From positions 1-64,000 of the forward strand of contig CDMY01000718.1 in NCBI GenBank assembly GCA_001179505.1: a stretch of DNA of 64,000 bases, in the 5' to 3' direction. Source of the DNA: Vitrella brassicaformis CCMP3155. Taxonomy: Eukaryota; Protista; Chromerida. The position numbers and the translations under genes are program-made. Shown here in pieces: positions 18,698 to 57,122 of the stretch (its first letter is position 1; each line of letters begins with the position of its first letter). Under the pieces are notes generated by a model. It had not been told where the DNA came from. It made no database searches and saw only the letters and a program-made list of their open reading frames with translations.

Positions 18698-19669
18698 ATG
18701 GTGAGCGGCACCCGCTTTTGAGTGCGCACTTCCTGTGGTCGTGAGCCGTCCTCTTGTGTCTGTGCAGTCGGCGTCGTGGTTCGGTTTGAGCAGTGGAGGC
18801 ACAACGCGCTGCCGAGTCCCCTGCTGCACCTTCGCCAACTGCCGCCGAACAGGCCGCCACTATTGCAAGTGGTGCAAGGAGACGGACTCCGACCACTTCG
18901 CCCGCGATTGCCGCTTCGCACCGCGTTCGACCGGCGCAGATGACGGCAACGAATCGGATGACAACGTGGGGCAGGGTGCATGGGTGGGAGAGAGCACTGA
19001 CTTCCTATGCATGGCTGGTGCTGTTGTCCGTATGTGTCAGCCTCGTGCATCTCGGTCGTCCCGTCGGGCATCTCGATCGCGAGGCAGCACGTCGGCTGCC
19101 TCAACGGGCAGCAGCCAAATCATGCAGCCCATGATGCAGGTACGCTCCTCGGCAAGGAACTGCTCGTGTACACCAATGGTGTGTTGTTCCAGCAAATTGC
19201 GGCGCAGTTGCTGACGTCGATGATGCAGCCGCCTCCGCCACCCCCTGCTCCTGCCACGGGAGCTGGCCAGCAGGACAACACCGACCAGACGGCCGATCAG
19301 AACACCAATCAGCAGACCAACCAGAACGCCAATGCAGCCCTGGTACGCACACACCCCACTGCCACTGCAAGCACTTCCTCCGCCTCTGACCATGTATTTG
19401 TATGTCCACTTCAGGCCGCCCCTGTGTGTGACCCGCGTGTGCTGGCCGCAGCCATGCTCTTCAGCAACCTCTTCCTATCGGGGCAGCAGCAGCAGCAGGG
19501 CGGTGACTCGCCTCGCCACCGGGGCCGCTCCCCGTCGCCTCGTCGCCAGTCGTGCGGGCTGCGTGGCTGCCGGGAGGACCACTCAACGCACAAGTGCCGA
19601 CAGTGCGGCAAAATCAACAGCCACATGACCAAGGACTGCCCCCAATCCAGGGGGAGCATGAGGGAGTGA
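18698..19669 (+). CDS. Protein with two copies of the C-x4-C-x3-H-x2-H-x-C-x2-C-x5/6-H-x4-C zinc finger flanking a Q/P-rich linker
   Basis: M|SASWFG...CRVPCCTFANCRRTGRHYCKWCKETDSDHFARDC (variant first half) lies near the N-terminus. CGLRGCREDHSTHKCRQCGKINSHMTKDC lies at the C-terminus. Splice phases are compatible. Confidence 0.65.
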
Positions 19670-51410: not shown

Positions 51411-52356
51411 ATGGTGAGCAGGGGCAGGCAGAGCAGTGCACCCGTCGGCCTCACGCCATGTGTGTGCGTGTGTCTTCCAGGCTGTCTGTCGAGTGCACAT
51501 CAAGACACCACCGTACGTAGCGTTGGCCCCGACAATTGTTGGCTGAATGAATGGATGGATGTTGGCTGGACGGGCGGGGCGGCTGATGCGGCTCGTCCCA
51601 CGTACGCCAAGGCACAGTACAGCAACACTCGCGTCGTGGGCTGACTGACACGTATATGGATGGCGTCAATGTGTGTTCATGTGGGCTGTGTGGGGAGTGG
51701 CCGCCATGGTGCACAAAGCACAACACATTGATGAATGGATTAATGGCGCTAAGGCTGGGGGAGGGAGATCAGGTGTGGGTGTTGGGGAGAGACGGACTTT
51801 TAACGGCCATCTCAGTGGGTACCAGCTCAGAGACGCAATGCTGGCCGGTGATATATCTAAATCATTACTTGCCTGCAATCGTTGCCTTCATTTTATGTTT
51901 TCAGCAGCATCGTTTAAACAATCCATTTAGACATGTACCATGCAGCACCCTGTGTCTGCCTTGGCCAAATGCACCGACTTAACCGAAGTGTCTCACCAAA
52001 GTCCACGAGGATGCCGGCACACTCCCAATCGCATTACCTCCTGCCCTGCCCATCAGAACCAACCCGCCCTCGCATATCCAGTGCTGTGTCTGCAAGTCTG
52101 ACTTCCTCGACGACTTGCAGAGAGGTGTCAGCTCAACTCCCTCACACACGACACACACGGACTTAACCAAAGTGTCTTCATAGAAAGTGACGAGTAGAAG
52201 CCTCGCTGCTCTGCCCATGAGAGCCCGGGCGCCCCTCGTATACCTACGGAGCTATCGCTGATCCCACACTACACCAGCCAGCCAGCCAGGCCCGTCTCAT
52301 GTATTGCCCTGCATGTGACCCCGCCCGCCCCTCCGCCCATGACTGTCTGTGTCTGT

Positions 52357-55109
52357 CTATCCGATGTTCGCCACATTGTTGGTATGGCCAGCTTCATCTT
52401 GGTCTGTTGGCTGCCTGCTGGAGCACACCCACCTGCCGTCGACCATGAACTTGTACATGTACCTGCCGGGCGGCAGCGACAAGGGCAGCACGAAGCAGTT
52501 GTGCTCCCCCGCAGACCAGTACATCGGATATCCGCCATGCCAGCCGTCGAATGAGCCCTTAAGCTCCACCTTGGAGGGACGAGTGTGCGCCGTCGGCACG
52601 TACTTGAAGATGTGATCGATCCTGACACCACCACCATAGGCACACAGCCACGATCTGGCCGCTGCTCTTAGTGCGGTGTGTGCGTCTGTCTCTGTGGGTG
52701 GTTACTTGCTGTCGCCACTCTTCTCTGCTGCAGAGAGGAGCGGTGTGGTCTCCTCATCCGCCGCCACCGCTTTGGCCGTGTCGATGTCCATATCGTCGTC
52801 CCCCTCCATGCTGGACTTGGTGTCGCTCGTGTCCTCCATCGGAGCACAGGCATCCTGCCAACCATGGCACAGGACAGCGAAACAGATCCATACCGTCGGC
52901 GCTCACGCGTACATATCCACAGCCAACCCACCTCTCTCGGGTTTTTGTCTTCTTTTTGGTCGCCACTCGCCGCCTCGTTCGTCACCGTTTGAGGCGCCGC
53001 AGACACTTCCTGCAGACACACACACAAGTGCAGCAACGTATCTGCTGTCTTGCAGCTCCACTTGACGGCTTGGCTCACCTTGGCGTGTTGGCGGGCTTCC
53101 CGGGTCAAATCGGCCAGTGCGGGCAGATGCCAGTGCTGTTGGAGGGATGGTGGAGGGGATGGTGTGCGAGGCTGTGACACACACACACACACACACACAC
53201 ACATCCAGTGTGATCGATTCGGACAGGCGTGCGGGGCAGCTTACCAGTGGTGGTGGGGGTGGTCGGCTTCGCTCCATGAGAGCCGCCATGACGGCATCGA
53301 ACGCCGACATGCGAGTCCACCCCCCGATCGCCCCACGTGTGCGCCCATCACACATCAGCTGCACCAGATGGCCCACCGTGGAGCACCCAGCATCCTTCAG
53401 GCTGTGCATGAAGTCCTTGGCGCCTATGAGACTCTGCTCGCCCCGCGTGTAGTAGTGCAGCCGTCGACCCGCCCGACTGGCAGCGCACCACTGGATGAGA
53501 AACTTCCACTGGGGATCGCCACCAAACACACCGCAGCCCCAGTTGCCTGAACGGCCATACACACACACGCACACACACACGAATGGACGCAGACGAATCA
53601 TGAACAGCCATCATTCCTGTGTGTGTGCGTGGTATCCACTCACCCGTCGCGAAGGGCATACCATCGACGACCGTCAGGCCATTGCTGTGGAACGCCGTGT
53701 GTGCCTTGTTGAGATCACGCACCACAGACGTCTCGTCGTACTGGTGGTTCTTCCTGTGCTTGCCAAAGTTGACGGCATCGAAGGCCACGATGTACTTGCC
53801 CAGGACGGAATGGCCGTTGGTATGTCTCATGGGGGCGGTGTCGTGGGCATGGCCAGCGAAGCTGAGGGTGTCGCGGCCGTAGCCGGTCGTCGTGCTGAAC
53901 GTCCTGGAGCCGACGATCATGAAGGCCTCAGTCGATCCCATGGGTCTGGGAAAGAGGTGCTGGGCGACGAGGCACTCCGGCTCGATGGAAAACAAGATCT
54001 CCTCCTGCACCGCACCTGAAATACTCACACAGACGCAGCAAGCTTGGCAGAGACAGGTCCACATGGATCAGTGCGTGTCTGTGCCTGTCTGTGTCTGTTT
54101 ACCGTTTCCCAGCGTCCCGCCACCGATGTGGGCATTGGCGAAGTCGCCCCTGATGCCCTTCGAGTCGAAGATGGACGCATCCTTCCCAATCATCAAGTGC
54201 ACGTCCATCAGGGGGATTGTCGACCTCGCCCACTCGTCAAGTCCCGCCCCGGGGCCGTCCAGGGCTCGGAAGATGACCACACGCTCTGTCTCGGTGGTCT
54301 TGCCCTGCTTGATCGCCCGCGCCATGGTGTCCAGGTAGTGGATGAAGCACTGCAGCTTGGCCTTGGCAGAGGGTGTCTTGTTGTCGAACAGGCGGTCGAA
54401 GTTGAGGCTGCCCGGGTGGCCGTGCTTGTGCAGACAGAGGAAGTCCGCACCGATGAGGACGAAGCACTGGCGGGCAGTCATGTGTGCCTCCGTGCCGCTG
54501 TAAGAGTGGCTGGACGGGGGCAGCAGGGGGAAGCTGAGGTCGCTCTTGGAGAGGACGTCACACAGGACGGGCAGCGTCTCGTTGATGAAGGTAGAGGTCA
54601 TCACCTTCTCCACGCCATGCAAGCTGCCCCCCCGCCCGCCCATGGCCGACTGCAGCGAGCTCAGCAGACGAGTGACATCCCTGGGCTCCTTTGCGCGTCC
54701 ATAATCCGTCGCATAGTTGGCGAGGATGGCCTTGACGTTGGCAGGTAAGCCGTGATGGGCAGGCGACTGGCGAGACGATGACGAAGACGACCAAAACGAT
54801 GAATGCACCTACACAGCGCAGCCGAGCACAGCAGCTCCAGCCGGACACACCAATTTCACCCAGGCAGCAGTGCCCTCGTGTTCTTGCTTACTCACCGGCT
54901 GTGTGGCTGACGTGTGTCCACCGGGGCCGTACCAGCAGTCACGCGAGAAGTGGTTGGAGTTCTTGTCCTTACACCACTTGCAGAAGTGCGTTGTGTGCTG
55001 CTCCGTGCAGCCAGGGACGCGGCAAGTCATACCAAGCCAATGCTGCACACACACACACGATGGGACAAGTCCAATCGCTGGATGCTGGTAGGGTGGTTGC
55101 TCTCACCAT
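52357..55109 (-). CDS. PARG: Poly(ADP-ribose) glycohydrolase with N-terminal zinc finger and C-terminal CBM48 (AMPK-beta-type glycogen-binding) domain
   Basis: PARG motifs are DFANAHIGGGTLG|GAVQEEILF (GGG-x-QEE), TGYG, IVAFDA, RDLNKAHTAF, ATG|NWGCGVFGGDPQWKFLIQWCAAS. The N-terminus is M|HWLGMTCRVPGCTEQHTTHFCKWCKDKNSNHFSRDC. The last exon (SK|IDHIFKY...VELKGSFDGW...LSLPPGRYMYKFMVDGRW...GHTNNV) is CBM48. The three linker exons join in phase. Confidence 0.85.
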
Positions 55110-55798
55110 GGCTGTGTCCTTTGCAGGGCAGATCAGGAAGTATGGCCCTCTGTGCCTCTTCTCGCTCTCTTCGCTTGGCGGACCAAAGAATGAAGCGCGG
55201 GAGATGGCGAGCGGACCAAGACGGCTCAGCAGCTGAGGAAATGCAGCAGGACAGGCAACAGGCATACCTGCTAATGTATTCCTGTAGGTCGAGACCCATC
55301 TGTGAAACCAGGTGATCCATAATTCCTGTGGCATCCTGTCGGCTTGTCCTGTCCTCGAGAGCGTCGCTGTTTTTTGTTCCCTGCTGGCCTTTGCGTCGTC
55401 TTGGAGACAATCGAGCGATACTCGCGGCGCATTGCTGACCGACCTCTGAAGAGCCGAACACAGCCGAGATCTTTGAGGATCCAAAGGTCTGCAAACAAGG
55501 CGCAGCACAACAGCAACACAGCGTTTTGACATCGTTCTCTTCCTTCATGCTGTGTCAAAAAAGGGCTGCTCCAGATCTGCGAGCTTCAAGTTGCAGATCT
55601 TATCCGACGCCAGTGCAGGGAGGGGTAGACAGGCCGTGTGCATGCTTTGCATGTACATGCTGCTAGTTTAGTGCGTGAGACAACAGGATCCCTCCGGGGT
55701 TACAGACACGAGTCTCGTTAAACACACTAACCAACCAACCGACGCCCAAGAAAACGCCATTCCTCGGCTCGTAAGGCATTCACGGGAAGCAGCGAGTC

Positions 55799-56452
55799 AT
55801 GTTGCAGGTACGCACGGTATATGGGCCCATAACGGACTGCTCGCCAGGATGCATCCTGGACGATTCTCTCTTTTATTGTGCGTGTGACACTGTGCTCAGA
55901 CGAGGGGCTGTCGCGTGCCCGGCTGCAAGACGAAGCACAGGCGGCACTACTGCCGTCTGTGCGGCGACGAGGACAGCGACCACTGGGCCAGCGAGTGCAC
56001 ACACCCCGGGAGCTTTACCCTCTACCACCAGACAGACCTACCGTCTGGTCAGGCCATCGCGTCGGGCCGCAACATGAAGCGGGGAACAGGAGGCATCGTT
56101 GGGGGCGGCATCTACTTGTAAGCAGACGACCGGCCAGGCTGTCTCCGTCTCATCTCCGCCACCGTGTGTGTGTCTCGTCAGTGCGGCGTCTGAGCAGATC
56201 ACCATGGGCAAGGCGCACCATCGAGGCTGCATGATCGAGGCGCGAGTGTACCTGGGCAACATCCTTCAGGTTTCCGCCCTCTGGCCCGGGCAGTACACCT
56301 TTGACAGCCTCACAGGGTCCGGCTACGACTCAGTGCACGTGATAGGCATGCCCACGGGCGATGAGTACATCGTGTATAGTCAGGAGCAGGTCAGGCTGAG
56401 GAAAATTCGTGACATGGCGACAGGCAGAGAGATACCGATCAACCACAAATGA
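55799..56452 (+). CDS. Minimal H-Y-E ADP-ribosyltransferase (PARP/Gig2-like) with N-terminal zinc finger, about 165 aa
   Basis: MLQ|TRGCRVPGCKTKHRRHYCRLCGDEDSDHWASEC, then TLYHQT (H), GIVGGGIY|FA (Y), IEARVYLG, GYDSV and GDEYIVY (catalytic E). Two GT-AG introns. Confidence 0.8.
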
Positions 56453-57122
56453 GACAGGCGGGCAATGGCGTGTGTCGAAGTGAGGGGCTGTGCCGTTTGA
56501 AGTCAGGAAGAGACACGTTTCTGTGCCTTTGCGTTTATTCTATGGGCGAATTTTTTCAAGGACCGGTGGTCAGTTCAAGACATCAGTCGCAAAAGCGTCT
56601 GCAGGTAGCTTTGCTGCCGATAGCTGCAGACGATTGTTTGTGGCACTGGCAGCTATCGGCAGCTGTGGCGGTCATCGATGCTGCTCTGCGACGGATCGAT
56701 GCTTGGTGCCCTTGCCGTGCACCACAGCGATGGGAGAGCGGAGCAGAGCAGAGCAGATGTGGGTGTACACGTCACACGCTCGTCGTGTTTTTTTGTCTTC
56801 CTGCTGGCGGTTTGTCTGATCGCTCGGTGGTGGCTCGGGAGTGAGCCTGGATTCATGGATGCTGGCAGGCTGGCTGGATGGATGATGGATTTCACGGCCT
56901 CATGGATTCCTGTACATGTCTGTTGTTGCATGTTATCGAGGTGAATTGGACTCGTGCAGCCACGTCAATGGTCCTTGCAGTGAAGGCCCAGTCATCATAA
57001 ACACATTGCACACTGAAATGGACCAAAATCTGCCCACTCACACAACGGCCAACACGGTGTGACGCCGAAAGAGGCACTCACACAGCGGGTACACCAATTG
57101 ATGAGGCTCACACCATCACCCA

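Follow-up and report, generated by a model that had tools for sequence, protein, structure and literature searches.

Results

The locus and its two genes

We analysed a window of 64,000 nucleotides (C718:1-64000; contig CDMY01000718.1) from the chromerid alveolate Vitrella brassicaformis CCMP3155, whose genome comprises 72.7 Mb with a GC content of about 58%. This study concerns two adjacent genes in the window, one for a predicted ADP-ribosyltransferase (ART), the putative writer of an ADP-ribose modification, and one for a PARG, its putative eraser, and the small zinc finger that both proteins share. The start codons of the PARG gene on the minus strand (55109) and of the ART gene on the plus strand (55799) are oriented head to head and are 690 bp apart, below the limit of 1 kb applied to bidirectional gene pairs. 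A first-pass annotation of this DNA had pointed out the pair with its coordinates and features, and the gene models and domain assignments bear it out. Its designation as a writer/eraser pair also holds as far as sequence and structure models go, the writer being a predicted PARP-fold enzyme with an H-Y-E triad and the eraser a canonical PARG.

Both gene models were built by hand from GT..AG boundaries. Four public sequencing runs (X1, X2, X4, and X6) were placed on positions 52300-56500. X1 and X6 are RNA-like because their contigs hold intron-skipping joints; X2 and X4 are DNA-like. The assembled contigs of these runs show presence, and neither expression level nor absence can be read from them. 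The features of the locus are as follows.

52357..55207, minus strand: finger-PARG-CBM48 gene, nine exons (hand-built model, RNA-like joints, Pfam)
52360..52620, minus strand: CBM48 / AMPK-beta-type glycan-binding module (Pfam AMPK1_CBM)
53353..54742, minus strand: PARG catalytic region with helical and macro-fold parts (Pfam, PDB matches)
54929..55030, minus strand: CCHHCCHC finger of the PARG, core CRVPGC...H..H.C..C......H....C (finger hidden Markov model (HMM), 63 bits)
55110..55798, no strand: region between the start codons, mostly 5' leader of the PARG gene (RNA contigs to 55207, probably to 55564)
55609..55743, plus strand: 5'-truncated copy of a dispersed repeat, about 135 nt, ending in (AACC)n, 56 bp upstream of the ART ATG
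55799..56452, plus strand: finger and mini-PARP (ART) gene, exons 55799-55807, 55900-56117, and 56182-56452
55903..56004, plus strand: CCHHCCHC finger of the ART (finger HMM, 57.9 bits)
56011..56449, plus strand: compact PARP-fold ART domain, about 125 aa (AF2, Foldseek, PARP3 alignment)
56026-56028, 56113-56115, and 56363-56365, plus strand: ART triad H46, Y75, and E137 (PARP3 alignment, paralogs)

The PARG-CBM48 gene

The coding exons of the PARG gene on the minus strand are 55109-55107, 55042-54896, 54808-54103, 54015-53644, 53546-53245, 53171-53079, 53009-52932, 52854-52706, and 52621-52357. Translated from the ATG at 55109 the product comprises 704 aa with an N-terminal finger, the PARG domain, and a C-terminal CBM48. 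The gene is expressed and spliced, as the joints 55042/55107, 54808/54896, 54015/54103, 53009/53079, 52854/52932, and 52621/52706 are found exactly in the contigs of X1 and X6. The joint 53171/53245 lies in a CA repeat, where the RNA-like contigs match approximately and are consistent with the model only. For the intron 53644/53546 no joint was found among the RNA-like contigs, which leaves this junction unconfirmed.

Pfam assigns exons 3, 4, and 5 to PARG_cat_N (1.7e-10) and PARG_cat_C (1.6e-25 and 1.7e-14), with 41.7, 90.4, and 54.4 bits, respectively, all above the cut-offs, and PARG structures in the PDB match the protein with a best expectation value (E) of 2.4e-10. The GGG-X6-8-QEE signature is intact in the spliced product and reads GGGTLGNGAVQEE. 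It spans the junction of exons 3 and 4 (about 54126-54001), whose joint 54015/54103 is confirmed by the RNA contigs. Judged by its sequence, the minus-strand eraser is a canonical PARG. The last exon matches AMPK1_CBM with 1.2e-19 (70.8 bits against a cut-off of 26.8), and because the joint 52621/52706 is present in both X1 and X6 the CBM48 exon belongs to the PARG mRNA. The Trp, Lys, Trp, and Asn positions that contact the glycan in AMPK beta-1 look kept.

The RNA contigs of X6 extend the PARG leader to at least 55207 and probably to 55564. There are in-frame ATGs in this leader at 55532, 55334, and 55265, and no stop codon separates them from the PARG reading frame. Therefore, the finger may not sit at the very N-terminus of the PARG. 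The first-pass annotation had placed the same finger at the N-terminus of both proteins; the same finger is indeed present in both, but its extreme N-terminal position in the PARG is put in doubt by these upstream ATGs. A methionine directly precedes the finger at 55030, which is also the case in one paralog. With its several upstream ATGs the leader (55110-55564, minus strand) would contain either regulatory upstream open reading frames or an N-terminal extension of up to 141 aa.

The ART gene

The ART product comprises 165 aa and is identical to the annotated Vitrella protein P0001, which carries the UniRef name 'PARP catalytic domain-containing'. In phmmer alignments its LYHQT, GGGIYFA, and DEYIVY motifs align with the H, Y, and E motifs of PARP3, and the H-Y-E triad is kept across all ART paralogs and in P0005. 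An AlphaFold model based on 14 paralog rows has a confidence (pLDDT) of about 90 over residues 40-165. All 50 PDB matches listed by Foldseek for this model are catalytic domains of PARP4, PARP2, PARP3, PARP1, or tankyrase, with E of about 1e-5 and a probability of 1.0, and the ESM Atlas is also consistent with a PARP-type ART. When 1.84 billion proteins were searched with a profile of the ART family, 2249 representatives scored at E<=1e-3, some of which pass the Pfam PARP family (PF00644), and the mini-PARP thus belongs to a large, poorly annotated branch. The ART is predicted to be a minimal PARP-fold H-Y-E enzyme of about 125 aa from a shortened and divergent part of the family. Profile searches and structure prediction of the spliced proteins, which had been proposed as a check, accordingly place the PARG and the CBM48 in Pfam and give the ART a PARP fold (AlphaFold/Foldseek).

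Compared with its paralogs this ART gene is shortened at the 5' end, which the first-pass annotation had overlooked. In ART paralogs such as P0006 (392 aa) the ART domain is preceded by a variant finger, then by a low-complexity region and two further fingers. Elsewhere in the window, a gene at 18735-19669 on the plus strand encodes what matches the N-terminal half of the three-finger ARTs (e.g. P0006), from the variant finger through the low-complexity region to a second finger. It stops right after finger 2, and the ART at 55.9 kb starts right before finger 3. The two genes, both on the plus strand and now separated by 36 kb, give the impression of an ancestral gene that has come apart into two complementary pieces.

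The dispersed repeat between the two start codons is present in at least 145 copies genome-wide. Most of the copies are 95-100% identical, and others are about 30 nt longer at the 5' end. It appears as a depth spike with loose contig ends in all four runs, and the depth reaches some 51,700 in one that is RNA-like. Rfam and ARAGORN found no RNA or tRNA match in the intergenic region, so this high-depth element is not a known RNA gene. It is probably a retroposon insertion of the type of a short or long interspersed element (SINE/LINE) tail, and looks young and transcribed.

A skip of 93 nt in ART exon 2 (55998/56092; one contig each in X2 and X4) was considered as an intron and rejected, given its AC..GA ends, its 30-nt sides, and the DNA-like nature of the runs. 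It is probably derived from a paralogue or from a chimeric contig, and possibly represents a deletion allele.

The shared zinc finger

The finger common to both proteins has eight ligands in the spacing C-x4-C-x3-H-x2-H-x-C-x2-C-x6-H-x4-C. A strict DNA pattern covering the first six of these ligands has 14 matches in the 72.7-Mb genome and its reversed control has none, and therefore the presence of two copies only 0.9 kb apart is not due to chance. We compiled 57 distinct finger units, some of Vitrella and others of metagenome proteins; none of them departs from any of the eight ligands, and together they yield the consensus C[KR]VxGCxExHxxHYCKxCxxxDSDHxSxxCP. One finger unit was modelled by AlphaFold with a pLDDT of 90.

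Comparisons to known domains returned little. Against the PDB, the best profile match has E 0.38, the best Foldseek match has E 8.7, and VIA-align gave no match with Z>=2. Among the 57 units no Pfam family reached its threshold, and neither PBZ nor zf-PARP matched at E<=1. There are weak, sub-threshold matches to zinc knuckles, namely zf-CCHC in 4 units (best E 0.031), zf-CCHC_2 in 3, and the knuckle region of eIF3g in 17. The C-terminal half of the finger (C-x2-C-x6-H-x4-C; residues 13-36) superposes weakly on CCHC knuckles, with a TM-score of 0.42 and a root mean square deviation of 1.7 A over 22 residues; all Atlas shape matches of the finger have TM-scores below 0.45. Proteins with several fingers also matched DUF3795 weakly (23.2 against 22.6 bits), but no stretch passed by itself, and we discarded this match as noise that adds up from Cys and His residues. 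On this evidence from sequences and models, the finger would be a two-zinc module that has not been described before and resembles a knuckle in its second half. In the literature we found no description of the finger, of the ADP-ribose genes of Vitrella, or of linked PARP/PARG pairs in eukaryotes.

Recurrence of the pair in Vitrella

Six-frame searches of the genome together with an HMM map of the fetched loci revealed five adjacent ART/PARG pairs, which lie on C718 and C238; the orientation is head to head in four and tandem in the fifth. Apart from the studied locus they were located by genome search and HMM.

C718, start codons 55109/55799: ART/PARG pair, head to head (studied locus)
C718, 171.2-176.2 kb: ART/PARG pair, head to head
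C718, 237.7-242.7 kb: ART/PARG pair, head to head
C238, 96.6-101.7 kb: ART/PARG pair, head to head
C718, 228.4-232.1 kb: ART/PARG pair, tandem

Other copies are unpaired: two PARG-CBM48 genes (C718, 179-181 kb and 94.7-98 kb) have no ART neighbour, and some 15 finger-ART paralogs of greater divergence have no PARG neighbour. C298 contains a further, distant PARG. A CBM48 ends five of the six other close PARG paralogs, and only the copy at 228-230 kb has none. Two tandem CBM48 exons (C718:96894-97972) are found in the PARG paralog at 94.7-98 kb, and no finger was found within the 2.2 kb fetched upstream of it.

The relationships of the ARTs and the PARGs are in agreement. The ARTs m4 and m6 are sisters (support 100/99), as are m2 and m5 (88/90), and among the PARGs of the same pairs m4 and m6 are also sisters (80/92) and m2 and m5 are the most similar, with 88% identity. 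At least some of the cassettes have therefore been copied as a whole. Pairwise ratios of non-synonymous to synonymous substitutions (dN/dS) are 0.30-0.49 for the ARTs and 0.29-0.49 for the PARGs, at dS of 0.16-1.0. These values indicate purifying but fairly relaxed selection, and copies that are not recent.

Finger proteins outside Vitrella

A search with the family profile and a search with the finger only were used to collect proteins from metagenomes and metatranscriptomes. In these, one to nine copies of the finger are fused to enzymes of ADP-ribose metabolism.

P0010, P0011, P0012, P0015, and L027: finger and mini-PARP
P0127 and P0157-P0160: finger and canonical PARG
P0125: finger and microbial-type PARG (PF10021, 1.8e-13)
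P0018, P0019, P0024, and P0025: finger, mini-PARP, and SidE_PDE (1e-34 to 3e-20)
L033, 310-1158, plus strand: two fingers and NUDIX (5.6e-10)
P0009: finger, PRK-family kinase, and mini-PARP

The exceptions are the finger-only proteins P0085 and P0072 and a FYVE protein, P0161, at a weak E-value. Using the finger region of P0127 as bait returned seven proteins including the query, and six of the seven are PARGs. The finger could have been a common promiscuous domain, as the first-pass annotation had cautioned; this is not so, given that its partners outside Vitrella are almost all ADP-ribose enzymes. This restriction supports the view that the finger aims writer and eraser at one target.

The pairing itself, another claim of the first-pass annotation, recurs beyond the five Vitrella pairs: on contig L022 (JFJP01029343, 3-4655) a finger-PARG is followed by a finger-ART. 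This contig has a GC content of 29% and intronless, closely packed genes, and encodes on one strand a PARG, a PARG with five fingers, an H-Y-E ART with three fingers, and another finger gene. L026 has a PARG with four fingers and, after it, a finger gene truncated by the contig end. Contig L029 (JFJP01029344), also AT-rich (29% GC) and closely packed, contains three PARGs, two of which have fingers. One finger-PARG on its minus strand is split over several short open reading frames, either by small introns or by decay. L022 and L029 may come from a protist or a giant virus; searching viral contigs with the finger-ART of L022 found no relative. On L023 (103-672, minus strand), P0125, the microbial-type PARG with four fingers, is found near an AAA_28 gene, a family that includes NadR-type nicotinamide riboside kinases. 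Together with the finger-NUDIX fusion, this neighbour hints at links to NAD salvage.

Discussion

A probable two-gene ADP-ribosylation cassette

In our view the locus is rather probably one copy of a lineage-expanded two-gene ADP-ribosylation cassette, in which the shared finger aims writer and eraser at a common ligand and whose two genes selection would hold together. The ligand, the kind of product, the coupling in vivo, and the biological role are each what we infer for such a cassette. The finger would recognise one ligand, for which single-stranded nucleic acid or an ADP-ribose chain are the likeliest candidates, and would thereby direct both the glycohydrolase and the NAD+-using writer to a single target. 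There, ADP-ribose would be attached by the writer and the chain shortened again by the PARG, whose CBM48 would confine it to granules of the starch or glycogen type or to another glycan. Single-stranded nucleic acid is suggested as the ligand by the knuckle-like half of the finger, by its basic residues, and by its tandem repeats, and an ADP-ribose polymer by the analogy to PBZ. Since a PARG cleaves ribose-ribose bonds, having one as dedicated partner makes oligo- or poly-ADP-ribose the probable product. The H-Y-E triad is necessary, but not sufficient, for the synthesis of chains with such bonds. Because the paralogs are many and clustered, the constraint is moderately relaxed, and the relatives occur in arrays on AT-rich contigs, the data suggest a stress or conflict (immunity-type) system, which would fit better than housekeeping metabolism of poly-ADP-ribose.

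A wider proposal is possible but doubtful. The finger might be a new reader or targeting domain for ADP-ribose-based modifications, possibly of nucleic acids, and might define a conflict system of protists, and perhaps of giant viruses, that pairs mini-PARP writers with finger-tagged erasers and processors. Vitrella would then have multiplied these cassettes and tethered the eraser to storage-glycan granules via the CBM48.

Weighing the alternatives

Several observations weigh against a working cassette at this locus, and they are best considered together with the alternatives that they feed. Some concern the ART itself. Its score is below the cut-off of the Pfam PARP family (19.2 against 26.7 bits). 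Its DNA homology to the paralogs begins abruptly at about 55900, which is the annotated intron acceptor, so that the two upstream fingers and the low-complexity region of the paralogs are lost. An in-frame stop codon at 55885-55887 precedes the finger and no ATG follows this stop, and the ART therefore needs the predicted start exon of only 9 nt (55799-55807), an annotation guess that has no support in the RNA-like contigs. The retroposon-like repeat ends 56 bp ahead of the ATG. The RNA-like runs X1 and X6 have zero depth over 55825-56500 and cover the PARG; these contigs, which cannot prove silence, lend no support to co-expression or to the co-regulated module suggested in the first-pass annotation. 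Hence, this copy may be either a shortened but working one-finger form, as such forms exist (e.g. P0012), or a silent remnant. If the ART were a decaying silent remnant, only the PARG-CBM48 gene would function here and the paralogous cassettes would do the work. The gene at 18735-19669, which matches the missing N-terminal half 36 kb away, would fit such a history. However, no damage is seen in the reading frame, at either splice site of the internal intron, or in H46, Y75, and E137, and compared with its paralogs this ART has a dN/dS of 0.30-0.49, the same as is found between the remaining copies. This preservation speaks against decay, single-finger mini-PARPs occur elsewhere, and missing depth in contigs is no proof of absence. 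We regard a remnant as somewhat unlikely, and it is the strongest of the alternatives.

Other observations concern the coupling. Recurrent linkage within one genome can arise by segmental duplication alone, and each of the Vitrella pairs is a paralogous copy derived from a single ancestral arrangement. The linkage could thus be devoid of function, the finger could be a general nucleic-acid-binding knuckle, as its CCHC-like C-terminal half would allow, and ART and PARG could act on unrelated targets. The two PARG paralogs without ART (C718, 179 kb and 95 kb), the about 15 distant ARTs without PARG, and the expression of the PARG without detectable ART are in line with this. Outside Vitrella, linkage is seen on one clear contig (L022) and on one cut by its end (L026), and the contigs of P0125, P0160, P0159, and P0154, which span only 2-4.5 kb, contain no ART or PARG partner. 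In the PARG tree, the finger-PARGs of Vitrella group with the Vitrella PARG on C298 (40% identity) and not with the foreign finger-PARGs (25-29%), so finger and PARG were joined long ago or more than once. On the other hand, a finger-PARG adjoins a finger-ART on L022 in a very different organism (GC of 29% against 58%, no introns), the unbiased finger searches gave PARG, NUDIX, and ART partners and no random mix, and the pairs have been kept through dS of 0.16-1.0 with both genes under purifying selection. Linkage without functional coupling is therefore, to us, an unlikely explanation.

Least probable of all, and in our opinion very improbable, is a toxin/antidote-like system analogous to bacterial DarT/DarG, in which a harmful ART would be held in check by the linked PARG as constitutive antidote: a writer head to head with its own eraser, an eraser that is transcribed while the writer is unseen in two RNA-like runs, and an expanded and clustered family would suit it, but there is no homology to DarT, the eraser has no DarG-type macrodomain, several ART paralogs have no PARG neighbour, and a canonical PARG leaves the protein-proximal ADP-ribose in place and would therefore be a poor full antidote.

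Comparison with known systems

The cassette would share its chemistry with the eukaryotic PARP/PARG cycle (PARP1-3, tankyrase, and canonical PARG), the Vitrella writer having the PARP fold and H-Y-E triad and the eraser the PARG_cat_N/C domains and the GGG-X6-8-QEE signature. In contrast to that cycle, the writer consists of a catalytic domain of only about 125 aa and is devoid of the helical regulatory, WGR, BRCT, and zf-PARP domains. Also unlike in that cycle, the two genes are linked, share a private finger, and have been multiplied as pairs, and the eraser carries a CBM48. To our knowledge, the writers and erasers of ADP-ribosylation in eukaryotes are normally encoded by unlinked genes.

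Like in bacterial DarT/DarG and other operon-linked pairs of ART and hydrolase, a transferase is linked to the reversing enzyme and this linkage recurs across copies. However, the Vitrella genes are eukaryotic, contain introns, and are arranged head to head instead of in an operon, and the eraser is a PARG and not a DarG macrodomain. The DarT family is not among the Pfam matches of the ART at E<=1. The DarT/DarG-type relation considered in the first-pass annotation is therefore an analogy only.

PBZ in APLF and CHFR and zf-PARP in PARP1 are zinc modules on proteins of the ADP-ribose system, and the finger resembles them in being a small zinc module, often in tandem, on ADP-ribose enzymes. It differs from these and from the CCHC knuckles by its eight invariant ligands in fixed spacing. 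The outside proteins with finger, mini-PARP, and SidE_PDE (P0018, P0019, P0024, and P0025) are reminiscent of Legionella SidE, which combines an ART with a phosphodiesterase, and the SidE_PDE domain is able to process ADP-ribose to phosphoribose. The ART of the finger relatives is of the H-Y-E PARP type, whereas that of SidE is R-S-E, and the architecture is absent from the Vitrella locus. As an observation in its own right, the combination of fingers, H-Y-E mini-PARP, and SidE-type phosphodiesterase recurs in eukaryote-like sequences and is a PARP-type counterpart of Legionella SidE. Small stand-alone PARP-like domains in expanded families are also known from fish Gig2, a small antiviral PARP-like protein, and from the PARP-domain proteins of giant viruses. 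The Atlas feature clusters nearest to P0001 are PARP-domain proteins of about 210 aa from Nucleocytoviricota and chordates (scores 0.88 and 0.83), which we treat as leads only. The link to Gig2 drawn in the first-pass annotation relies on these leads, and the antiviral role put forward there would be conjectural. For Gig2, we know of neither a finger nor a linkage to PARG.

Implications

Little is understood of how PARP-like enzymes that are small and stand alone reach their targets. What is new here is a finger that has no Pfam family at threshold and no PDB match, and its fusions to ADP-ribose enzymes outside Vitrella, and we consider this undescribed finger to be the most interesting element of the system. 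The ART offers a natural minimal PARP domain for mechanistic work, and the fusion of PARG and CBM48 suggests a link between ADP-ribose turnover and storage-polysaccharide granules that we have not met elsewhere in the searches made. One domain of 35 residues tags a writer, two kinds of PARG, NUDIX, and SidE-type phosphodiesterase fusions across several unrelated microbes, which makes the finger an experimentally accessible entry point to what may be a new branch of ADP-ribose signalling or immunity in protists.

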